The notes under the pieces were generated by a model. That model saw nothing but the letters and a program-made list of their open reading frames with translations. It searched no databases and was not told the DNA's origin. A stretch of 64,000 bases of DNA from Selaginella moellendorffii (taxonomy: Eukaryota; Plantae; Lycopodiophyta): NCBI RefSeq assembly GCF_000143415.4, contig NW_003314287.1, positions 1,571,514-1,635,513 of the forward strand. Direction: 5' to 3'. Position numbers and translations under genes: made by a program. This document shows, piece by piece, positions 14,269 to 29,238 of the stretch; position 1 is the stretch's first letter; every line of letters begins with the position of its first letter.

Positions 14269-15071
14269 ATGATTTTCGGAGACAAGGGACGAGCGCACAA
14301 AGAGTCGCGTGATTCGCCTCCAGGAACTTGACAATGCAGTAAAACAGTGTCTTTTGTCAGACTTTATTGGTGGCGGTGGTGGTCGGGTCTTGGATCTGGC
14401 TTGCGGTAGAGGAGGCGACATCTTCAAGCTGGATGGACTAGGAGTGCACAAATATTTGGGGGTGGACTTCTCCATGAAAAAATCAGGGAGGCCGAGGCGA
14501 GAGCTCAAGCCCTAAGAGCTATGACAGCCAAGTTTGTGGAGTACGATTGTTTCTCGTCACGTTTGCCTCAAGATGTCACAGCGGAGGGACCGTATGACGC
14601 TTGCAGCTGCCAGCGTGCAATACATTATGCATCCAACGAGGCTACTGCACGTACAGCCCTGTACAACATCTCGTCCTCGCTAAAGCGGGGCGGATGGCTT
14701 GTAGGCACCACCGTGGACTCGCGGGTGGTTTTGGACAAGCTAAGGAGGGGTGTCCAACAGTGTACAGCTTGAAGAAACCCGTGAACAAAGAGCTGGTGTT
14801 TGGCAACGAATACGACTTGGTAATTCTTGCAAATTCTTGGTAATTGGCATGCATGACCAGCTCCAGACCATACTCCCTTGCAAGCTTCTCCCACGCATCA
14901 AAAAACACAATGTACTCAGGGCAGTCATTGACCGCGCCCTCCAGTGCTGGCAAGCACAGGCTGGGCAGGAAGGTTGGCGGGCTCACAGCCACGAAGGCAG
15001 AGGATTTCCCCCTGTATTGCGTCTTTGCTTTCCAAAAGCTCCCCTGTATGAGCAAGAACAAACGAAACTAA
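14269..15071 (+). pseudogene. mRNA cap guanine-N7 methyltransferase-like pseudogene, copy 1 (intronless)
   Basis: SRVIRLQELDNAVK, VLDLACGRGGDIFK, YDACSCQRAIHY, LKRGGWLVGTTVD, LYCVFAFQK; frameshift near 14475; internal inversion 14829-14947. Confidence 0.8.
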
Positions 15072-15559
15072 TTTGGTGAAATGAATGTATAAAAGCCTCT
15101 CAATCAAATCTTGTTGTTTGCAAAAGGCAGCGCTCCCTACTTTCAAAGTCCCACTTCTTGGAAGCTTGCCTCCATTCCATAGCATCTTCATAAAAGGCAC
15201 GTCGAATTGTCTTAACAATGCAGCAAAGTGCTTTAAATTCAAAGTCCACGACCATCAGCCTTGGAAGAACCTAATGGTTGAAATGAAGCTGATTGATGAT
15301 TTAAATTGATGGAAAAATGAAAACTAAAGTACATGTGTGCAGGTTACAGTGCAAGATGCTAGCACATAAGGTTTCAGCCTCTGCAAGTCAAAAGAGCACA
15401 GAACACAGATTGTTTTCCTCGTGATCTATGTTGTTCTCTGATCACTCGCAGCCGCTTGACACCAGCAGCTCAGATTGCTGAAACAACCACAATCCAAGAC
15501 ATTTGGTGACAAAAGAGGGTATAGCCTCTTACCAGGAGAGCTACGTCGAGAGTAACTTG

Positions 15560-16562
15560 TAGGTGAGACGATCAGCTTGGCAAAATCGAGACTCGTACGG
15601 CATGTCGTCCACCCCCAGATCACCGTAACACCCTCCAACACCAACTTTAGACACCGGGCACTCGCGCTCCGTCACAACTCCACCACGCAACAAGTGGAGT
15701 AGCTGGGTGGTGAGGTCGCTTCCAAAGCTGGACACCCTACCAGCAATCCCGCTGTAAACCTGGATGCTTCCGGAGTTCGACCTGGTTCTCACTCCTCGGC
15801 TCGAGCCTCAACCCGTCCAACTCCAATTCCATCACCTTGGAGCCATCGTAGAGCGTCGATCGCCTCGCCGCGTCCTCGTGGATGGAACAAGGAAGCTGGA
15901 GACTCCACTCTCACAGGCAGGCAGTCGAGAGCAGAGAAGAGGAGGAGATGGTCCTGCTCAAACACAAGAATCCCCGTGTCGTCGAGTGCGACTAGCTCTG
16001 GCACGCGAGTCGACCCTGTCTCCTGTCCGTGGCAGAAGCTCCACCTCCTGTCGGCTGCGTCCCAGGCAAAGAGCTCGAAGCTACCGGTGCACACGTACCC
16101 GGCAACCAAGGAGCCACAGAGCACAGCCAAGCACTTCACCTCCCCATTCTCTCGCTGCTCGCAGGGAAGCTCGCCCATATAAGGTGCCAGTGGCTCGCCC
16201 GGATCACATCAGGCACGTGGACAGCGCGACACAGAAGTAGAGGGAGCCAGCGCTAGAAAATACCCCGAATCTCAACTCCCACACAGTGTTGTCAGCGAAA
16301 GAGAGAGCTCTCACACCGGACAGTCGCGAGAATGGGGGAAGCTCGAACCACTCGTCACAGTAGCCACAACGTGTGTACGCACTCCATGAACCATAAGAAC
16401 CACGCAATCCACTGGAATGGTGGAAGCATCAAACTGTGTCATAAATTGCTCCCAAGCTCTTGATACTAGCCACAAGTGTTCTAATGTTACTTTTGGAGAT
16501 AGATTATGTTTTTTAATGCTTGGCAAAAGATGGTTTTTTTTATTGCTCATAAGGTTATACAA
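15560..16562 (-). pseudogene. Probable degenerate F-box (kelch-like) gene
   Basis: F-box-like LPSIKKHNLS...LWLVSRAWEQFM, then fragmented GC-rich ORFs with Trp-ended beta-repeat-like segments (ELFAWDAADRRWS); several frame breaks. Confidence 0.4.
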
Positions 16563-16599
16563 TTAAGAGCCATTTATAGTGCCATGACTGCCTTTTCAT

Positions 16600-19000
16600 T
16601 ATAGAGTTCCTAGTTAGCTTTATTATGTTATGGTAATTTCATTGTTCTCAACTAAATTGACTTTTGCCATAATAGCAAGTTACTTGATAGGCTTTAGAAT
16701 AATTTCATTATTCTCAAGTTGATTGGCTTTCGTTGTAATAGTTAATTGTTTGATACTTTGTATGAACCTTGATGGTAAGTTGGTGAAGTATCTAATTCAT
16801 TATGTGATTGTGAGCATAATTTTTTTCCATTAAGAGTATAATTTTTAAATTGGCATGGAATGCATAAATAAATTTTTTTGTCTCCTTGTTAATATGAGAA
16901 AAATTTTAAGTAGCAAACTACATATCTATATAAAAAAAATTATAAAAGTTAAAATATTAATTCACTTATGAACTTTGTTTTCATTGAAAGTACATCCATG
17001 GCACCTGTGGTAAAATGTAGGTCCTCTCAAACTTTGAGGGTAGACCTGGAAGAAGTTAACTCCCCTTCATATCGAAACAAAAAAATATAAATTTAAAGGG
17101 GATGTTATGTTGTAAATTTTAAAAGTTTACATTTTAAAAATTTTTAATTGTTATGACGAAATGTATTTATCTCAATTTTTTCTTTGGCTTATTTAAACTA
17201 GTCTATAACTTATAAAAAAAACCATAAAATTTAATTATATAAATTCCAATATAAATTTTTATGTACTTATAACAATCAATTTAATTTTTTTAATGTTATT
17301 TTAGATCTTTTTTATCTTTCTACTTAGTGTGTGCTAATTTATCCTTGATAGCATAAGAATGCACTTTCAATATTAAATTAAAACTATGCAATCTTCATGA
17401 TTTTGGTAAGTATGGTCATATTAGGTTTTAAGTGAATACACATTATAGTTATTATTGATAAAGGGTTTTTCTACTTTGCTCGGTGTTAAAATGTAAAATT
17501 ATTTTTACTTTACTTGGTGTTAAAATGTAAATCCCTCAGTGTAGATGATAATAAACGTCGAACTCTCACCCAACTCATTATGCCAAAAAGTAGAAGTTAA
17601 GAAACCCTTCATTGAATCACTCTCATACATTTCAACAATTAGATTTTACGAAATGCTTATTTAAACAAAAAATCTTTCTCCCACATATTGATGTTAAATG
17701 TTTATTTTAATAAAAAATGAAGATTCAAAATTGATGGTATATTGGTGAATGAGGGTTGTGCATTTTCCCTCCCCAAGACTTTATAATTAAGTTAACTTTG
17801 ATAAGAGTGCATGGAGATTGATTATTTGATTTATAATATGTTATTATTTTATAAATTTATTGTGGGTAGCTGCATAATAGCCATAAAAAGTTAGATAAAC
17901 AAAAGATTTAATCTATGTTTTAATTGGAGACTTTTGATCATAAATTTGCAAATTTTTTAATTGTTTTATTTTTGATTTTGTATGTTTATTTTAAGCTCTC
18001 ACATTACTAAAAATAAGTGGTTCTAATTGTTGTTAAGGAATGCTCAGATTTTCAAGAGTACTATCAAAAGGTTCATGCAACATTAGTTAATTTAGTGTTT
18101 ATATTTTAAATTTGTTTTAGGTCTTTTATTATATTGGTCAATGTATGTTTAAATTATCTTCTATTACCATATATTGCTATCTATTTAGTTTTACATCATG
18201 CGGTGGAGCAAATTATAAGTAACAAAAAAATTAGGGTTTAAATCTTTTTTCAATTAGTTAATTATCTTAGAATATATTGAGGTAATCTATATACTACTCT
18301 TTGAGTTGAGTAATATTAGTTTGAATGACTTATTAGGAAATTTTTGGTTTAATTTACTCATACTATACTAAATACAATGGTGGGAAATTTTTGATTTAAT
18401 TATGCTTTTAAAATTTTTAACTTATATTTATGAGGGCATGAATTTATAAGGAAGCATAATAAATTATAAATAACCAAAGAAAATAACTTAAAAGTAATTT
18501 ATAAGAGTTCAAACAATAAACTACAATCCAAAACAAGAAGTTAAAATGTCATTGGGTTTAAATAGTACTAAGTTGGGTAAACTAAATTTTCTATAAAATT
18601 TAAATTTAAGAATTTATACCAATCTTTATTTTTATTGCATGTATGCAAGATGAAATAAATTTAGCAACAGTGGGTGAATGAGATTGGGTAACTTGTTATA
18701 AAGTTCAAATTTAAAAATTTATACCAATTTTCATTTTCTATGCATCTGTGCAAGAGGAGATAGAGTTAACAACAACTATATGTATACATATGACACACCT
18801 AGCCAAGACTTAGCTATGCATGTACATAATCATTACACATTATATATTTCCTTATATCTTTTCCATTTATCTCATTTTATGATTTTTTGTTTGTACCTTT
18901 TTTTTAATAATGTAAATGAGTCACATAATATGTTATATTTATGAATTTGATTTGCTAAGTTACAAAATTGAATGGTTTGCACCTTGCTCTTTACCATTTT
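16600..19000. other. AT-rich island, probably decayed transposon DNA
   Basis: No ORF of 60 aa or more, very low GC, several short degenerate duplications (about 16630-16760, 17465-17530, 18590-18775). Confidence 0.45.
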
Positions 19001-19139
19001 TCTTTTATACTCTTGCATTGCTCTTTGAATCTCTTAGATGATCTTTGTGAGACAACAAATGATTGGCTTAAGAAGGAGTATCTGAATTCCTCACTTCAAC
19101 CATAGAATCCATAGTCATGGGCTTCCTCCAAGGGAGAAA

Positions 19140-20200
19140 ACATTTAGCCGGGGTGACTAATAGATTCAGCAACCAGACTATTTTCCTCCATTGTCTTCAC
19201 CTAGCACTTGCCACTTTAAACTGAGATAGAGATCCTTACATCTGCCAGAGCTCTGAAAGAGAAGATCACCTCCAAGTCAAGCTCCTTCTCCAAATGTTCA
19301 ATAGATAGCACATTTCTACCAAAAGGCATTGCCATCAAAGCTCGATCTGCTAAATAAGATTAGTAACTGAAACAACATGGTTGTGCTATTTTGTTCACCT
19401 TTCTTGTTACACAAGAGACTTTGAACAAGTATATCATCTCGTATAGCTGCCGCTCACTCAAGTACTAACCAACAAAAGATTGCAGCATACCATTTTATCC
19501 ATGCTCTTCACCATCTGACAAAGAAGACCAAAATTACCTTGAAGAAACAGCAAGAGCTCATTTCTTTTAATCATTACTGTAAGCGCATCCATAGGACATA
19601 AAATGTAGCTCAGAGTCTCACCTATTCAGATAATTGCCAAGTGTAAGTTCCGGGAAACAGTGGGACTGGACGAGTAGGCGAACAAGTAATTGATCTCCAC
19701 GGACTTGTGACAAAAACCAGTTTTCATTTTCACGGCCGGATCTCTGCCATGCCACAAAAGATACTCATATGGCAAAAGAACTCCCAGCACCTTCAGCATC
19801 TATGGTACCACCACGGAGTCAAGTAGGTTTGAAAACCGAAGTACCTGCGGCACAAGAATCAACGCGTTGCAAATTTGCACGGACAGTACCTCTGGATCAT
19901 ACGTATCTGGCATGAATGTTCCGTATTGTAACTTGAGAACCTGTACCTGTGGATGAAAGTAGAGTAAACAAACGCAAAAGAGCATAGAAATGGCCAGCAC
20001 CTTTGCAAGAAGATAAGAAAGAGAACCCTCACATAGCGCACGAGAATCATTGGCATACCGGGCCCTGCAATCAATCAGCTGCAAACGTTTTCCAGAAGCA
20101 CCGTAGAAAAACCGCAGAGCTTTATGAGCGAATAGAGAAGTCCATGTCACCGCTCCACAGGCCGACGGCAAGAGATGTTCCAGCTTATGCCGCTGACAGA
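19140..20200 (-). pseudogene. Decayed multi-exon gene fragment, family not recognised
   Basis: Exon-like blocks with GT/AG ends (QVLKLQYGTFMPDTYDPE; WFLSQVRGDQLLVRLLVQSHCFPELTLGNYLN; RNVLSIEHLEKELDLE) interrupted by stops. Confidence 0.4.
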
Positions 20201-20209
20201 TACCTGTGT

Positions 20210-21560
20210 TGGGCAATAGAGATTTTCGACGTCCATGCCATCCGGTTGTGCTTTTGAATGTTCCCGTAAGTGCTCTTCAAATCTGTAACACCAACGTAAA
20301 GCATTCCAGGACACGACATTTCTCTCTGGCATGTGGGCAAACGTTTTCAAAGCTTTATCGATATTCCCGCAATCGGCATAAGGTGACAGCATAGAGTCCA
20401 TGCCAGGCGATTTCTCTCCAGCATAGAGTCGAGCACAAGCTCAGATTGCTTGAGGCTGCTGTTTTGGGCGTACGCAGCCAACATGGCGTTTCTGACGGAT
20501 GCCCTCAAACATTTCTGGGGATGTCCTGAACAAGGTGCCAAATGTAGACATTCCTGGCGAGCTTCTCGCCGTAGCAAGAGTGTCTTCTCGCGCTTGGTTG
20601 AGAAGCCCAAGCAATTGCGCTTGATCCTGATCCATTTCCAGAGTGTGGAGCTCGAGAAGCTCGGTGGTTAAGTTGGTGCTCGTCGGACGAGCCTCGTCCT
20701 CCAGGGTGTGGGAGAAGTCACTGAAGGTGCGAGAGGGATGGACTACAAAGAAGAGGACCCTGTTGCAGGTCATGTGCCAGCCGCGGCGCAAACACCACAA
20801 TGCTGGCCAAGACATGAAAGACTTTCACAGATCTGGGGAGGACGAGCAACCCTGTGATTCGTGATTGATCAGGAGCTCATTTGCATCTCGGTGTCCATAT
20901 CTCTCCAATTAGCTCGTCAAGATGTATGGGCTATGTGGCAGCCGCGAGGGGTGGAATTCGACCCAAGAATCGCTTCTCCTGGTCCTCAAAATGCTTGCTG
21001 CATATGCCCACATCGGGGATCTGGTAGACTTTGAGACATGCTTCTGGAAGATGCATTGCTTCTTTGAACACGATGCCTACCGCGTGAGATTGGCCAGCGT
21101 GCGCCTCAAATCCATGACTACCTCGAGCATGGTAGTCGACGAGATTAATCGTGCCGGACAGTAATTACGAGCGCGTATGGATGTTCGGGACTTGATGACG
21201 ACACGAAAGCCCTGTTGAATGAGCAGAGTGTGATACCGTGATTGCATGTTACTGGCATCTACAAGGCCTCAAATCTCTTTTACGTGCTTGTTTCTGGGAT
21301 TTAGTCACTGCGGAAGGATGGAAGACGCTTTAAGATGCTTCCTCTCGATGCTCGTGGAACGCTCTAAACGGGAGCAAAAGAAGTTTTCGATCGCAAACCA
21401 TAGCTTAGTAACTTAGAACTCCATTTTGGCTGGGTTTGTCATCTGAAAAAGGCAAAGCCTTCTTATCTTGGAACTCGCTCCTCTGTCGTCGCAAAACAGG
21501 ATGCTGTGAAATGCTGAGCTTGTGTTTGAAGAGATGGCCGAGAGACTCTGTGGTGTGACC
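20210..21560. pseudogene. Collapsed mosaic: PPR-B N-part (-), AXY9 (-), PPR-A (+), PPR-B C-part (+)
   Basis: 20210-20520 matches 35404-35757; about 20523-20830 matches AXY9 (GWHMTCNRVLFF, FSDFSHTLEDE); 20860-21350 matches PPR-A; 21350-21560 matches PPR-B; all with large internal deletions. Confidence 0.8.
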
Positions 21561-21574
21561 ATGCAGATGAGAGC

Positions 21575-22220
21575 AGGGAACGCTGCCTCTTGCAAACAAC
21601 GAAGTTTAATTGAGAGGCTTTGCGCTTCTTATTCTTGCTCATACAGGGGAGCTTTTGGAAAGCAAAGACGCAATACAGGGGGAAAACCTTTGCCTCCGCG
21701 GCTGTGAGCCCGTCACCCTTCCTGCCCAGCCTGTGCTTGCCAGCAAATTCTTGGAAATTGGCAGGCATGACCAGCTCCAGACCATACTCCCTTGCAAGCT
21801 TCTCCCACGCATCAAGAAACACAAGGTACTGCAGTCAATGACCACGCCCGCCAGTGCAAAGTCGTATTCGTTGTCGTGTTGCCCACCCTCTTAAGCTTGT
21901 CCAAAACCACCCGTGGTGCCTACAAACCATCCGCCCGGCTTGAGCGACGACGAGATGTTGTACAGGGCTGTACGTGCGGTAGCCTCGTTGGATGCAGCGT
22001 AATGTATTGCAAGCTGGCAGCTGCAAGCGTCATACGGTCCCTCCGCTGTGACATCTTGAGGCAAACGTGACGAGAAACAATCGAACTCCACAAACTTGGC
22101 TGTCATAGCTCTTAGGGCTTGAGCTCGGCCTCCCTGATTCTTTCATGGAGAAGTCCACTCCCATATATTTGTGCACTCCTAGTCCATCCAGCTTATGGCC
22201 TCCGGCCAGATCCAAGACCC
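21575..22220 (-). pseudogene. mRNA cap guanine-N7 methyltransferase-like pseudogene, copy 2
   Basis: Near-identical to 14390-15130 in inverted orientation (MTAKFVEFDCFSSRLPQDVTAEGPYDACSCQ; FLDAWEKLAREYGLELVM); frameshifts; lacks the internal inversion of copy 1. Confidence 0.82.
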
Positions 22221-22994
22221 TCAGCTAAAATAAACATCAGCAATATCTCAAACCTAAAAGAATAATCTAAGACACAATATATAATCAAGCTATAAGCCAT
22301 CAATGACTAAAGATTGTCAATCACCCCTTTATTAAAGATGCATAATTATTATTGAAAAATAATTCACTATATGGTGAATGACAAATTATTCATTATCAAT
22401 CAAGAAAGACCTCTAATAAAAATAATTAACTATCCTAACGATAATCAATCATCACCAAAAATAGCAAGATGAGGAAATTAACTCAAACATCAAATCTAAT
22501 GAGCTATCCATAAAAGCACAATGATAAACTAGATGATCTGTAAAATATCAGGAGCCAAAACATTTAGAGTCTTGAAAAGCCACTATAGAGACAACAATTA
22601 TTGAACACTGCTCAGAGACAAAATTTACAATTGCAAAAAACATTACTAAGCCGGTGTTTAAGAAAGTTTATAAATTATAAACTGAAATAAATGAATTTCC
22701 ACCATTAGATGATAAAATATACTAGAATCCCATTTAGCCCTGTGGATGGCGAGGAGGGATTGAATGCCAAGGCGTGCAGTGGCAGCACTGATGCTGCAGC
22801 CATAACATTAACCCTGCGAAATATAAAATATTTGAAACCTCATACTTGCCTGTTGCCTTGTGTCCACAAAAATATATGTATATTTTAAGAACTCACTATT
22901 ATTCACAAAAATTTGTGTGGCCTATTCTCAAAATATCTTGAGAAAGGATGTTGATTTACATAGATTTTTGGCCTCTGCAGTTAGATTTCCCAAC

Positions 22995-23114
22995 CATTTT
23001 GACTGACCACATTTATTTTTTATTGACTCCAAGTGCATATGTATATTTCCTTGGAATCAAACATTTTGACTGACCATATTCATTATTCTATTGACTCCAA
23101 GTGCACATACATAT
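22995..23114 (+). promoter_or_regulatory. Duplicated ~52-bp element carrying four W-boxes
   Basis: TTGACT at 22999, 23023, 23066 and 23091 (two as TTGACTGACC), ending about 80 bp before the RLP ATG. Confidence 0.55.
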
Positions 23115-23176
23115 GCCAAATTGGAGGAAACCATACATAAAAAGGCAAGAAACTCAGAGTGTCTCTGCTTTGCTTC

Positions 23177-25232
23177 ATGGGTTCAGGCATAGTGATTGTT
23201 GTTCTCGTTTTTTCCTTCATCTTCTCGTTCTCGAATGCAAAAGAGGATTCATCTGTGCTTTTGAGCTTCAAAAACTCTGTGGATGATCCATCTAAAACTC
23301 TGTCCAGCTGGAATACAAGTGTCAACTTCTGCCGGCACTGGAATGGCATAGCCTGCACGGCGAAAGGCCGCGTTTCCGTTCTTGCACTTGAGAATTTAAC
23401 ACTTCCGGGGTCGCTCTTGGTTTCCACAATCAACTCTTTGCCCTTCTTACTCGAGCTATCTGTCTTGGGAAGCAACTTCACTGATGCTTTGAATTCCTCC
23501 AAACAAGCCTGCTCACTTGAGTTGATCGAACTGTCGGGTAATCAAAACATGTCTTTCACGACCAATTTTGATGCTATGCTAGTCTGCAAAGGTCTAAAGA
23601 TTCTCAATCTTTCAAACAATCAAATTGAGGGTAAGATTCAGGTGCCAATAGGCAGCGTTTTGGAAGTAATGGATCTCTCCAACAACTTCTTTAGTGGGGA
23701 GCTTCCCCACTTACTGTTTTCACAGTGCAAGAGATTGAGATATCTAGACCTCTCCCACAATCATCTCACCGGAGAACTCCCAGAGGATCTTTTTAAAAAT
23801 TGTACTAATCTACAGCAAATCTCTCTGGCCTCCAACAGCTTCCGTGGCACGTCATTTCCCTCTATTCACTCCTTACCATCGCTAGAATTTCTCGACGCTA
23901 GCTTCAACAACTTCACAGGTCCGGTTCCTGCAATTCATGAGAACCTCAAGCATCTTAATCTTAGCTCAAACAATTTCAGCACAACCAGGGAAACCTTATG
24001 TCCATCGCTCAACTCCTCGAGGCTGGAGAGCTTGATCCTGGTCAACAACAAGCTCACCGGAAGGGTATTGGACAGCGTCATGAATTGCTCTAGCCTTAGG
24101 ATGTTGGATTTGAGCTTCAATTCGTTAACAGGAGAGATTCCAAGCAGCATATGCAAACAACTTCCCAAGCTCGAGCACTTTCTCGCGTGGGTAAACAACC
24201 TCCAGGGGCAGCTTCCCCAAAACCTTGCATCGTGCAGTAACCTCACCGAGATCATCCTCACTTTCAACAATCTCAGTGGAAACATTCCACCTGAGCTGTT
24301 GTCCAGCACAAAGGGCCTCCAATGGTTATGCTTGAGTAATAGAGTTGCCTGATTCATTGGAGCACGCAAAGGAGATGCTAGTGCTTCAGCTGAGCAACAA
24401 CAGCCTGCAGGGCAAACTGCCCAGCAACATGACCATGCAGACGATAGATCTCCGTGGAAACAGCTTGAGCGGGAGGATTCCAGCTTCTTTGAGTGGTTTC
24501 ACAGGCACCAAATCTGCCAAATCCAACGTTGCTGGGACGAGCTTGAAGCTAGCAGCAGGGATAAAAACATGTGGTTGCATCGACAACACTTTTATCCTAC
24601 AAGGAATCTCTTTGGAAGAAATGGAGAGCCTACTTTCTGCCAAGAGCGGTGGCTGCAAATGCTCCATAAGTTTCCTTCCAGCAAGCTTTTATGGTTTCTC
24701 CACCACCAGCCCTGCGTTCATCGATGTTTCATTTAACAGACTGGTGGGAGACATCCCGCGGGAGCTTGGGAGCATGCAGGACGCCAATTACCTCAGTGTT
24801 GCACATAACTTCCTGTCCGGAACAATCCCCGTGGAGCTCGGGTATCTCAAGAAAATGATAGGGATGGACTTGTCATTCAATGATCTCCAAGGAAGCATTC
24901 CAAGCTCGTTTTCGTCTCTCCAGTCCCTCACAGGGTTGAATGTGTCGCATAACAACTTGTCCGGTCCAATTCCACAGGGTGGTCAGCTTTGGACACTTGA
25001 TCCGAGCAGCTATGCTGGAAATGCCGGTCTGTGTGGTTTCCCTCTAGCATCATGCATCACATCACCACCAACAGCAACGAATCGTGCTGACCATGGCGAT
25101 GGCGATGGTGGATTGGGAGCAGTTCTTGCGGTGAGCTTTGCAATTGGGGTGCTGGTCTCGGTTATCTCCTGTACAATGGTAGTCACCATTGATAGTAGGA
25201 AACGCTTTGTGGAGAGAGCTTGCTATGGATGA
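23177..25232 (+). pseudogene. BRI1/BRL-like LRR receptor-like protein (island domain, TM, no kinase), one frameshift at ~24340
   Basis: Signal peptide, Cys-pair N-cap, plant LRRs, ~70-aa island (24492-24710), 4 further LRRs, GNAGLCGFPL C-cap, TM, 14-aa tail; two overlapping ORFs 23159-24352 and 24345-25232. Confidence 0.8.
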
Positions 25233-25870
25233 TGGACACACCGAATAAAAAAGAGAGCCCTCAGACTAAGGCCATGTTTTCTCCACACACAACCGAGCGC
25301 TCTCTTTCTCGACAAATCCATTCGCAGCAAAGAGACGAGACCCACAAAGGAAACGACCCAACACTCGTTCTCGAGCCCAGTCTCGTAAGGAGACCAAACA
25401 AATGCTCGATCAAACAAGCCAGGGCCGCCGCCAATGCGAAACCCCTCTTACCGCAACTTCATCCCTGCCGAGAAAACGAGAGCGCCCAGCCACAAATTCG
25501 GTGTGGTTAAGACAGTGGTCATCACCGGGCTGATGAAATAGATCTCAGCGAAAAGGATTTCCTCACGCTTCCAGGAGCACTGGGAAAGATAACGCAGTGA
25601 AAAAACCATCACAGATCTGCTAGTAAAAGGGGCATCTCAGAAACCAGGATTAGCAGCTGGTATACCGTGCATCTGCATCGGATCCACAGAGAGACCCATG
25701 AAAGCGCAAGGATAAACAAGGAAATCCTCCCCGATGCCCAAAGAACCCTAGCTACTGACCAAGAACCCTAGTCCCAATAGCGAATTTTATACAGCCAAGA
25801 ACCCTAATTCAAGGGCCTCCAAAATTGGAGTAAGAAGATATTTAAAAACGAAAGTTTCTTCGGCCGAAAG

Positions 25871-26514
25871 TTATCCTCTCCCTCGCAGCAATTCCTCGAT
25901 GACATCCAATCGCGTCTCCACTCCGGAGATTCTTGACATGATCGCCTGCCAAAGAGAGCTAGATCGAAAGAGAAAAAAGAAAAACCCATGGATCATACCT
26001 CTTCCTTCATCCTCCTCTCGTCTTCCTTCCTCGCCTCCTCCTTTCTCTTGGCTTCCTCCGAGCGCGCGTTCCTCGACACCTCGAAAATCACCACTGCTCC
26101 TCCAACCTGGAAAGAATTTTTGGGAAGAATCTCTCAATGCGAAAAGGAATCGAATCGAAGAGTGGCACTTTACTGACCCCAAAAATGAAGAACTCGCCCA
26201 GCATCTCCGACGCGGCTTGCACGGCCTTCTCCTCGTTGAGCGGCCGGATTTCCACATCCGTGGCGTGGCCATAGATCCGCCTTTGCAGATTCACGCTAAA
26301 CCTGTGGTTGAGCTGCAAGAAATCGCGACAACAAGCGCGAGGAGCCAGAGATTTCGAGCGAAATATCGCAATGCCACCGCCATACCTGCGCCATTTTGCT
26401 GATCGACTCGCGAAACCTGGGATGATGCGCCGCCGTCTTCTTCAACCGATTCGCCACGGGCTTGCTCAGCGTCCGCAATGCCAGAGTGGCCAGCTTCATC
26501 AATGGGAAGATCAT
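25871..26514 (-). CDS. OPA3-like protein, 4 exons
   Basis: MIFPLMKLATLALRTLSKPVANRLKK; IRPLNEEKAVQAASEMLGEFFIF; coiled-coil EARKEEARKE. Confidence 0.9.
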
Positions 26515-26662
26515 CGCACCGCATTGACCGGATCGGCCGCGCCAATTCAATCTATACTCGCTACTAGCGCCATCCCAGCAGCTTCTACCATCGCTTCCAA
26601 CATAAACCCTAAACTTCGAGAGATTAAAGAGTAAACACATTTATTAGATTAAGCTATCGCGT

Positions 26663-29238
26663 TTAAGCCAGCGTTCTAAACCATGACAGCGTTTTGCTCA
26701 GCGCTTGGTCCAAAATCCGTGAGCCTTGCTCGATGCCTGGCAGGAAAACCCAAGATTTTTGTCAAGTTTTTCGCTTAGATTTCTTGCTTCGATCGATTGA
26801 AAAGGAAGAACTTACCGAGATCTACAGCCACTCTGTGACCACACATCATTCCAGAGAAGGCTACCGCGATGACTCCTTGGCCGGGAAAGCAGCTATCTCC
26901 AACGCAGTATAGTCCTTCCACTGCCTGGAACATCGACTGTGATGAATCCAACCTATCTTCCAGAAGAAAAAGCTCTAGAGGTTTTTCGCAAACTCACTGT
27001 TGTGTTGAATGGCATCCCGAGAAGTCCTTTGGGTTTTCCAACAGGGATTGGTCCGTAAGTTCCTTGGTCTCGAGCGAGAAAACGTCTGTGAGTTTTAGGC
27101 GTCCCGACCTTTGACACACGAAAGTTACAAAGTCTAGCGTGAGAGAAATGAAAACAAGGAAGGAAACTTGAGAGCCTGCTCGTACCTCTCGAAGAACTGT
27201 TGCGTCCTTGAGACCGGGAAATAGTTTCGCTTCCAGTCTCTTAACGATCACATCGGCCACAGCCTCCTTCTTGTCATTGTACTCCGAGCTACTTAACCCC
27301 TGCGATATCATCAGAAATTTTAGTTCTTTCCTTTGAAAGCTTGTGTGAAAGCTATGGAGCTCCACGTACTTGCCAATCATCGGCCCATGCGGTGGTAAAT
27401 ATGTGAAGAATATGGCGATCCTCTGGAGCTAGCGAGGGATCCAAAACAGTGGGAATGCTCAAGAAGATCGTACCATAAGGCTTCTCGAGGTTATCCCACG
27501 AGTCCTACAAGAGAAAACCAAAGACTCAAGCTAGGAAAAATGAAAAGCCCGAGTAGCATACCTCGAGAACGAGATGATGGCACTCGGTTCCTTGAGGCAA
27601 AACTTCGGCTCTCACTCCCATATGTATTGAGAGAAACGATGGAGCTTTCTTGTAGACTTTCTGGAAGCGTCGTTCTTCGTCTGGCATTTCAGAATCGAGC
27701 AGCTTTTCTGGTGATCGAAGCAAACGCAAGGTCATATTCTAGAAACCAAATTCACCATGATAGTCGAAAACAGTACCAAAAGTATCCCATCGCGTAGCAT
27801 TGGAGATAACTGTTTTGCCAAGTAATCGTGTTCCATCGGCTAGTTGCACGCCAACCTGAACACCTGAAGCGATCTCACACTCGTTAAACAATCTTGCAAA
27901 CCAACAGAAGCGCCAGAAGGAAAAAATATATACAAAGTGGAACGAAAAGAGTGAAAGCTCACCGCTTTGTTTTGCTCCATCAAGATTTTCTTCACGTTGG
28001 ACTTGTAGCGAATTTCGCCTCCTCTCTCAATCAGGCCGTCTGCCAGCTCTTGTGCTATCAATCCGACACCTCCAACGGGATAGTTGATCCCTCCGAAGTG
28101 TCGATCGCAAATCACCTACAAAGCAAAGAGTGTTTGCTATAATCTGTTCGTCTTCTTTGGAAAGAAGTGTTACCATGCTCGCATTGATCATTGGTGTACA
28201 CAACGCGTCGACGGTACTGACGAGGAAGCACTAGAACAAAATCACAGTTAAGCCGAAACTGGAAAAAAAAAAAGTTCTAAAGCTTACTTCGGTATCTATA
28301 AACGACAGCAAAACTGGATCTTTGATGTACTTCCTCGCAATATCACCAGCATTTTGGGGAAGATAGTACGCTGCGCGAAACAAAAAATGAGAAAAACCAA
28401 TGTCTAGAATCGAGTTTTTAAACTCACCAAGAGTCAAGCAAGCCAGTGGGTTTCTGAAAAACTGGCCGAAAAGGTAGAGCGGCTCCTCGAGAGATTTAAG
28501 CTCCAGCGAATTCAATGCGTTAAAAACCTGTGCATGGATGGTTCGTCGACGAGGAAACAACGAAAAGCGAGCAAACAAAACCTTCCAGCATTCTCCGTAG
28601 AAGCCTCGTATTCCTTTCTCTTCGTGTGGAAACTGGTCGACAAGCTCGCCGATGAAATCCTCGTAGTCTCGATGAACTCTCACGGACAAGTTGTTTGGCA
28701 TATGGTAGTGGACAGTGGTGGGATCGGGTATGAGCTCCAACTTTCGTCCGACAGCAGCCAAGGCACGAGTTATCAGATTGATCGACCCCTGGATGGAGCA
28801 AGAACAAAAAAGAGTTGGAACGCTTCTCAAGAACAAACTTTGTCCACTTGCCTTGTCGCTGAAACCAAACATGACGGACGATCCAACATCGAAAGTGTAG
28901 CCATCTCGCTTGAAAAACCCAGCACTTCCACCAGGAATCACGTACTTCTCTAGCAGCAGCACCGAAGCGCCACGGATTGCGAGTTGACTTGCTGCAACCA
29001 AGCCCCCGATTCCAGCGCCAACCACAATCGCATCGTACCTCTTCTCCGCGAAGAATCCCTGGCTTCCATCGCTAGGAGCTGCCGAGACGGAAGCTTGGCT
29101 CGTGGAAACAGCCGCCGCAGCAAAACCGGCGTGGGTGCCAAGACGCACGGATCTCTGCTTGCTTGGAGCTCCAAAACAAGGCAAAGGATTCGTGGGTCTT
29201 GCGGAGACTCCACAAGGAGCGAGAATTGCCGGTGCCAT
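26663..29238 (-). CDS. CRTISO: Carotenoid isomerase (prolycopene isomerase), multi-exon
   Basis: Transit peptide, FAD-binding [72 protein letters not shown]-terminal LSWFRTLA*. Confidence 0.95.

Follow-up and report, generated by a model that had tools for sequence, protein, structure and literature searches.

The 64,000-nucleotide stretch of Selaginella moellendorffii DNA analysed here (the window; positions below are those of its full length) carries, at 23177-25232 on the forward strand, an intronless gene in which two open reading frames (ORFs) jointly encode one leucine-rich repeat (LRR) protein, a predicted receptor without a kinase whose extracellular part resembles those of the BRI1, BRL1, BRL2 and BRL3 receptors (together BRI/BRL). 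The two forward-strand ORFs, 23159/23177-24352 and 24345-25232, overlap by a few bases and lie in different frames, and Pfam searches of both pieces returned LRRNT_2 and many plant-type LRR repeats. Read in the intact allele described below, the LRRs are regular until about residue 440 and then give way to a non-LRR insert of about 70 residues (window 24495-24713); about 16 LRRs stand before this island and four after it, about 20 in total, and the last four are followed by a cap (N.GLCG), a hydrophobic helix, a 13-residue tail and the stop codon at 25230-25232. An earlier reading of the letters alone (the original prediction) had proposed this same order of signal peptide, LRRs, Cys-bearing island of about 70 residues, four LRRs, cap, transmembrane segment and short tail, and the ORFs, Pfam matches, LRR register and hydropathy bear it out, coordinates included. 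The features of the gene are as follows.

23177-23239, forward strand: start codon and predicted signal peptide (MGSGIVIVVLVFSFIFSFSNA), from the ORF; the hydrophobic N-terminus precedes Pfam LRRNT_2, and the annotated 391-residue product (P0001) begins here.
23240-24340, forward strand: N-terminal cap and about 14-15 LRRs in the first frame, until the deletion (Pfam LRRNT_2 and LRR_1/4/8; LRR register; by tblastn, allele residues 1-388 correspond to window 23177-24340).
24338-24352, forward strand: junction of a 14-nt deletion (between 24340 and 24341) and the resulting premature TGA at 24350-24352, inside the LRR LQWLCLSNNRLSGELP (pairwise alignments with the paralogue and the allele; public-run contigs).
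24342-24494, forward strand: two pre-island LRRs in the shifted frame (by tblastn, allele residues 394-689 correspond to window 24342-25229; LRR register).
24495-24713, forward strand: island domain of about 70 residues with a conserved Cys...GI...Cys pattern (position and length as in BRI/BRL islands; hhalign).
24714-25037, forward strand: the last four LRRs, or C3 region, in which the QxxT/S loop reads GQLWT (24981-24995) and the cap motif reads NAGLCG (25020-25037), from the LRR register and motif columns; motif role from PMC10834447.
25038-25112, forward strand: extracellular juxtamembrane stretch with the acidic end ADHGDGDGG (net charge -2 in the last 15 residues).
25113-25190, forward strand: transmembrane helix by hydropathy scan, with four small-xxx-small pairs and no GxxxG.
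25191-25232, forward strand: 13-residue basic cytoplasmic tail (DSRKRFVERACYG) and stop codon, from the ORF; the tail is nearly identical in the paralogue P0002.

The original prediction had also held that no kinase precedes the neighbouring OPA3 gene, and this stands. Pfam detected no kinase domain in either ORF piece, tblastn with two BRL kinase domains found no kinase remnant in the 64-kb window or at the allele and paralogue loci (best E 0.15), the stop codon lies 13 residues past the membrane helix, and the next gene downstream is the OPA3 gene, on the minus strand.

For comparison we used two scaffolds of S. moellendorffii GCA_000143415.2, GL377599.1 (L002) and GL377590.1 (L001), and the nearest database proteins of the window product all came from S. 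moellendorffii as well. The original prediction had taken the source for a probable lycophyte, correctly. The protein EFJ21464 (P0237), encoded on GL377599.1, falls in the window product's own 90% cluster. The GL377599.1 locus is the other haplotype of the window gene, because it has the same neighbours (an mRNA cap methyltransferase gene upstream, OPA3 and amine oxidase genes downstream) and matches the window at 98.4% identity across 12.2 kb. It carries an unbroken ORF of 689 codons. Relative to both this allele and the paralogue on GL377590.1 the window lacks 14 nt (AACAGATTGAGTGG) after 24340, and the sole other indel relative to the paralogue is an in-frame 6-nt insertion. The deletion cuts the native sequence to 388 residues, and the annotated product of 391 residues has neither the island nor the membrane anchor; the window allele is therefore most likely null. 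We rejected an intron as the alternative to a frameshift, since the junction offers a single GT..AG pair, just 7 nt across, and the allele and the paralogue are read here without interruption.

Three separate studies supplied public runs (X1, X2 and X3) whose contigs we aligned to the gene. One X1 contig (record 5) spans the junction without the 14 nt and with zero mismatches across 24284-24408, X2 carries both forms (record 17 being the deletion), and X3 carries the intact form. The sequenced clone is heterozygous for the 14-nt deletion, which is real and not an assembly error, because contigs of independent runs reproduce it exactly and the intact form is present too. That the lesion is the only one in an otherwise constrained gene would suit an assembly or sequencing error in a window allele that is really intact, yet with the exact deletion in X1 record 5 and X2 record 17, from data sets that hold the intact form as well, we regard such an error as scarcely credible. 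An exact look-up of the 391-residue product yielded no contig.

Between the window gene and the paralogue dS was 0.30 and dN 0.068 (dN/dS 0.23), and the ratio was similar before (0.24) and after (0.21) the break, which points to a gene that is held under purifying selection and to a recent lesion. The gene occurs in runs whose assemblies are small, at 24-57 Mb. Coverage in X1 and X2 begins near 23090-23150, with none just upstream, while the 210-Mb, DNA-like run X16 does cover the upstream region; these edges suggest, no more, that the gene is transcribed; no sequencing run is recorded as RNA. The two haplotypes differ sharply in their conservation along the locus. Upstream of the gene (window 14278-22964 versus L002 423-9810) their identity is 88-90%, indels are numerous and some matches are inverted (such as L002 8830-9149 versus window 14711-14385, on the opposite strand), and from 23058 onward they are 98.4% identical, so that a sharp edge separates divergent from conserved sequence. 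Within window 22933-22985 one X16 contig skips 51 nt (TA..AG), probably another, promoter-proximal, haplotype indel.

The gene is one of a family of at least seven loci in S. moellendorffii, most of which have a haplotype partner (a slash joins partners): window gene/P0237, P0002/P0238, P0005/P0240, P0006, P0007/P0241, P0147/P0248 and P0244. The proteins are 641-788 residues long with tails of 3-18 residues, are without a kinase by Pfam, have diverged to identities as low as 35%, and bear the automatic NCBI names BRI1, BRL2 or BRL3. The paralogue XP_024535501 (P0002; 687 residues, 85% identical) lies on GL377590.1 among different neighbours. Its DNA match to the window (L001:9971-12092 versus window 23146-25260) is limited to the coding sequence plus some 30 nt to either side (88% identity), flanking synteny being absent, and suggests that it arose by a dispersed, possibly retroposition-like, duplication of an intronless gene. 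At L001:8265-8381, 1.6 kb upstream of the paralogue, lies a 117-nt fragment with 82% identity to window 23146-23262, the 5' end of the gene; it represents an incomplete additional copy of the gene's beginning. In two of the early gene models, P0003 (SELMODRAFT_30948) and P0004 (SELMODRAFT_77688), about 40 island residues are removed as a false intron, and several other models are partial. An exhaustive search of 1.84 billion representative proteins with a profile built from six family islands matched S. moellendorffii proteins only, apart from two spurious repeat proteins (one from Haliotis, one an unnamed ENA protein); no kinase-bearing carrier of the family island and no carrier from another lycophyte was found among these representatives. 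Within the databases searched the family island type is, by this profile, lineage-restricted and never joined to a kinase.

Several comparisons place the ectodomain of this family with BRI/BRL. In BLASTP searches with the intact allele, scored by the best single high-scoring segment pair, ten BRI/BRL proteins with near-full-length ectodomains gave 228-301 bits, and the other, non-family LRR kinases and receptor-like proteins (RLPs) that were fetched gave at most 219 bits. All ten carry the Pfam Island domain, and several of the alignments cover nearly the whole ectodomain. A region-restricted homologue search was dominated by generic LRR kinases, because HMMER adds up many weak repeat matches. 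Of the PDB sequences, BRI1, BRL1, BRL2 and BRL3 alone give an unbroken alignment to the window protein that runs through the island. In a maximum-likelihood (ML) tree of 59 ectodomains (LG+C20; support given as ultrafast bootstrap/SH-like approximate likelihood ratio test, SH-aLRT), the family was monophyletic (100/99), BRI/BRL were monophyletic (99/95), and the two together formed a clade (100/99); the PSKR/PSY1R-like proteins were the next group, weakly attached, and the main clade of 15 RLPs (100/99) stood well apart. A tree without the island columns again joined the family to BRI/BRL (SH-aLRT 99), and the approximately unbiased (AU) test rejected a clade of the family with PSKR/PSY1R (log-likelihood difference 35.8, p 0.0005). 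According to Ngou et al. (PMC10834447), Xb kinases that have an island ahead of four LRRs belong with few exceptions to BRI/BRL or PSKR/PSY1R, and EMS1- or NILR1-type relatives are therefore less likely. On the rankings and trees, the family is best placed as the lycophyte group that is sister to every BRI1, BRL1/3 and BRL2 ectodomain sampled from seed plants.

Individual residues point the same way. The Trp of the signature AWxN occurs in 7/7 family members, 11/12 BRI/BRL and 0/40 other LRR receptors, and the Cys of the LSSN..F....C repeat in 7/7, 11/12 and 2/40, respectively; two island Cys and a G-I pair are found in the family and BRI/BRL only. The original prediction had rested its comparison on irregular positions of this kind, which it matched to BRI1/BRL rather than to generic RLPs, and the counts uphold that match. 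It had further named an ectodomain falling with PSKR or generic RLPs as contrary evidence; in the BLASTP ranking, the trees and the AU test alike, the ectodomain went with BRI1/BRL.

The island itself lies between the fifth-last and fourth-last LRR, as in BRI/BRL, with four LRRs after it. Measured between the same anchor columns, flanks included, it spans 80 residues in the window gene and 77-85 in the family, as compared with 78-84 in ten complete BRI/BRL islands, 42-52 in PSKR/PSY1R-like proteins, 40-65 in most RLPs and 12 or 36 in other LRR kinases. Most RLP islands compared contain a KG motif, which is absent from the family island, and the lysine motifs Yx8KG and Kx5Y are likewise absent from the island sequence. 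Profile comparison with hhalign matched the family island to BRI/BRL islands at 84% (E 8e-6, 70 columns), as against 0.2% to PSKR/PSY1R and RLP islands; BRL2 versus BRI1/BRL1/3, run as a control, gave 99.4%. An AlphaFold model to which BRI/BRL rows had been added showed a strand-strand-helix-strand island fold with a predicted local distance difference test score (pLDDT) of 49-78 and, as a whole, superposed on BRI1 with a template modelling (TM) score of 0.83-0.86 at about 2.7 A, compared with about 0.60-0.66 for MIK2 and RXEG1 and 0.32-0.59 for PSKR1. With a model from the family-only alignment, the 20 best Foldseek matches in the PDB were all BRI1/BRL chains, and across both models the top 20-22 were all BRI1/BRL. 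The outcome that the original prediction had named as contrary for the island, a lack of any profile or structural likeness to that of BRI1, was not what hhalign (84%) or the two models, both best on BRI1/BRL, returned.

Other results weigh against the BRI/BRL placement. Pfam Island (PF20141) gave no match up to E 10 for the window piece and six family members, while scoring 110 bits on a BRL1/3-type protein and 66 bits on BRL2 as controls; island-only hidden Markov models of family and BRI/BRL, compared either way round, scored no more than about 6 bits; and phmmer with the island alone found no PDB match even at E 10. The family-only AlphaFold model had an island pLDDT of just 29-51, and the better model, being built with BRI/BRL rows, is not independent of BRI/BRL. 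The trees were sampled from sequences other than EMS1, NILR1, fern, moss and further lycophyte ones, and their BRI/BRL rows are seed plants.

The missing Pfam match would also suit an ordinary immune-type LRR-RLP whose likeness to BRI1/BRL is convergence or generic LRR similarity, the more so as RLPs too have an island-plus-four-LRR plan, a QxxT/S loop and an acidic juxtamembrane stretch (PMC10834447). Such a protein is, however, difficult to reconcile with a main RLP clade of 15 members (100/99) separate from the family and BRI/BRL (100/99), with RLP islands that are shorter (40-65 residues including flanks), carry the KG motif absent here and reach an hhalign value of only 0.2%, or with Trp and Cys signatures common only to the family and BRI/BRL, and we consider it very improbable.

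Descent from the BRI/BRL lineage raises the question of steroid binding. In BRI1, brassinolide is contacted by Y597, Y599, Y642, H645, S647 and F681 (Li et al. 2022, PMC9570414). At 597 and 599 Tyr and Phe alone are tolerated, other substitutions having impaired signalling, and a Tyr or Phe at 597 divides brassinosteroid receptors from non-receptors (PMC9570414). We carried the BRI1 numbering over through BRL1/3-like and BRL2-like rows and read the positions in two MAFFT alignments (A1 and A4) and the hhalign pairing. The numbering also used the BRI1 sequence, which agreed with the published Y597, Y599, G611, Y642, H645, S647, S662 and F681. At the AtBRI1 positions the window protein has Leu at 597 and Leu at 599, read in a weakly conserved stretch with only moderate reliability (a caution on the inference below), Phe at 642, Phe at 658 as in BRI1, and Asn at 681; the 643-647 loop is shorter, and Gly611 has no counterpart. 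BRL2-type rows have I, L or M at 597, where the window protein has Leu, and the basal family member P0241 shows a BRL2-like LVF motif at the 597-599 stretch. BRL2 is not known to bind brassinolide. With Leu/Leu in place of Tyr or Phe at 597 and 599, a BRI1-style steroid pocket is unlikely, and brassinolide, bound as it is in BRI1, is probably not the ligand. The family's link to steroid perception is, as far as these residues tell, evolutionary rather than demonstrated.

A contrary view would make the family the missing brassinosteroid sensor of lycophytes, in which a Selaginella brassinosteroid or precursor occupies a pocket of different residues and the signal passes through SERK and another kinase to BIN2 and BZR1. 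Epibrassinolide and propiconazole both evoke responses in Selaginella, which has BIN2, BSU1 and BZR1 but in which no BRI1/BRL kinase was found (PMC3862569), and a BRI/BRL-descended ectodomain with an equal-sized island, an aromatic residue (Phe) at 642 and Phe at 658 as in BRI1 would fit. Yet 597/599 is Leu/Leu although BRI1 tolerates only Phe as a substitution there (PMC9570414), 681 is Asn, the 643-647 loop differs in length, Gly611 is unmatched, and Leu at 597 resembles the I/L/M of BRL2-type proteins, and so we hold this sensor to be unlikely. A broader version, in which lycophytes sense brassinosteroids or a related sterol-derived signal by a split receptor whose kinase-less BRL-lineage ectodomain binds the hormone in a pocket of other residues and passes the signal to SERK and an adaptor kinase, strikes us as about equally unlikely. 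If true, it would explain the brassinosteroid response of Selaginella in the absence of a BRI1/BRL kinase and would make the steroid-binding ectodomain older than the lycophyte/euphyllophyte split.

In our preferred reading, the gene probably encodes a receptor-like protein of the BRL lineage, kept by purifying selection, whose signal passes through partner kinases. The intact protein would serve at the cell surface as the subunit that binds a ligand, by way of the island and the LRRs next to it. As with BRI1, PSKR1 and RXEG1, a SERK co-receptor would be recruited by the conserved final LRRs and their GQxxT loop, and the output would come from partner kinases, on which the protein would depend because it has no kinase of its own. 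Conservation along the protein is highest in the last four LRRs; in the QxxT/S loop column, Q is present in 5/7 and T in 6/7 family members, and the window gene reads GQLWT. In BRI1, PSKR1 and RXEG1 the GQxxT loop contacts SERK co-receptors (PMC10834447). The juxtamembrane end has a net charge of -2 in the window gene, -5 to 0 in the family and +1 to +4 in BRI/BRL, and its acidic stretch would liken the protein to RLPs that use an adaptor kinase. Counting against such an adaptor, the membrane helix of the window gene is without GxxxG, the SOBIR1-association motif, which in the family only P0241 possesses.

A kinase-less protein with a tail of 3-18 residues and no GxxxG adaptor motif could instead be a non-signalling decoy or negative regulator that sequesters ligand or SERK co-receptors, and purifying selection is compatible with any retained function. 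The acidic juxtamembrane stretch and the conserved membrane helix and tail resemble those of signalling RLPs (PMC10834447), however, and we regard a decoy as doubtful. The original prediction had left two possibilities side by side, a relic of a lost BRL receptor kinase or a stand-alone ectodomain that signals through a partner kinase; the stand-alone ectodomain fits better than a decaying relic, because dN/dS is 0.23, an intact allele exists and at least seven loci are kinase-less.

The literature on brassinosteroid receptor evolution holds either that Selaginella has no BRI1/BRL homologue or that BRI1-like receptors occur only in seed plants (PMC3862569, PMC9223546, PMC6744412, PMC9478962), and in the literature searched we found no mention of kinase-less BRL-lineage proteins of Selaginella. 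Our comparisons indicate that a lycophyte has the ectodomain lineage of BRI/BRL together with its island, and has it only as kinase-less proteins, which would push the origin of the BRI/BRL-type ectodomain back at least to the ancestor that all vascular plants share. Such proteins are already known as a class, in that Ngou et al. 2024 (PMC10834447) describe BRI1/BRL-clade LRR-RLPs and the NCBI pipeline already labels Selaginella proteins as BRI1/BRL-like. The family was overlooked because kinase-based surveys are blind to kinase-less proteins, and the false-intron models P0003 and P0004 may help explain why the island family escaped published surveys. Its members are concrete candidates for how Selaginella senses brassinosteroids, although the missing receptor-defining residues argue that they are more likely receptors for something else. 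The evolutionary interest is moderate, with a testable link to brassinosteroid perception in lycophytes, and allele-specific studies gain a small practical aid in the probable null allele for which the sequenced clone is naturally heterozygous.

Around the gene, window 25871-28115 (minus strand) holds the OPA3-domain gene and then an amine-oxidase/NAD-binding gene, an order kept on the allelic scaffold; the OPA3 region's first minus-strand ORF (25871) lies only about 640 nt beyond the receptor stop. Window 18000-19000 is AT-rich, with a GC content of 0.23-0.26 against 0.4-0.55 in the surroundings.

Set beside known systems, the family shares with PSKR1 and PSY1R the Xb subgroup's island before the last four LRRs, but their islands span 42-52 residues (including about 12 flanking residues) as against 77-85, the hhalign value is 0.2%, and a joint clade was rejected by the AU test. 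Immune-type LRR-RLPs (RXEG1, RLP23, Cf-9 and EIX2) resemble it in overall architecture, the QxxT/S loop, the acidic juxtamembrane end and the short basic tail, whereas they belong to another tree clade and have shorter islands with Yx8KG/Kx5Y and GxxxG in the membrane helix, motifs that the window gene lacks. The likeness is closest to BRI1, BRL1, BRL2 and BRL3 (LRR receptor-like kinase subgroup Xb), with a collinear ectodomain at 32-37% identity over 540-770 columns, an island of about 70 residues before the last four LRRs with the Cys...GI...Cys pattern, the AWxN Trp, the repeat Cys and the GQxxT loop in the last LRR; unlike them, the family has no kinase, does not match Pfam Island, has Leu/Leu at 597/599, has an acidic rather than basic juxtamembrane stretch, and forms a separate lycophyte clade that does not fall inside BRL2. 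BRI1 has 25 LRRs, more than the about 20 seen here. Nearest in kind are the BRL-like LRR-RLPs of Ngou et al. 2024 (PMC10834447), a study whose main text makes no mention of Selaginella: they too are kinase-less, have ectodomains of the BRI1/BRL clade and are of unknown function. Those proteins, however, are 'highly similar to BRL1/BRL3' and keep the brassinosteroid-binding residues, whereas the Selaginella family is without those residues and is old and diversified, with at least seven loci that reach down to 35% identity.

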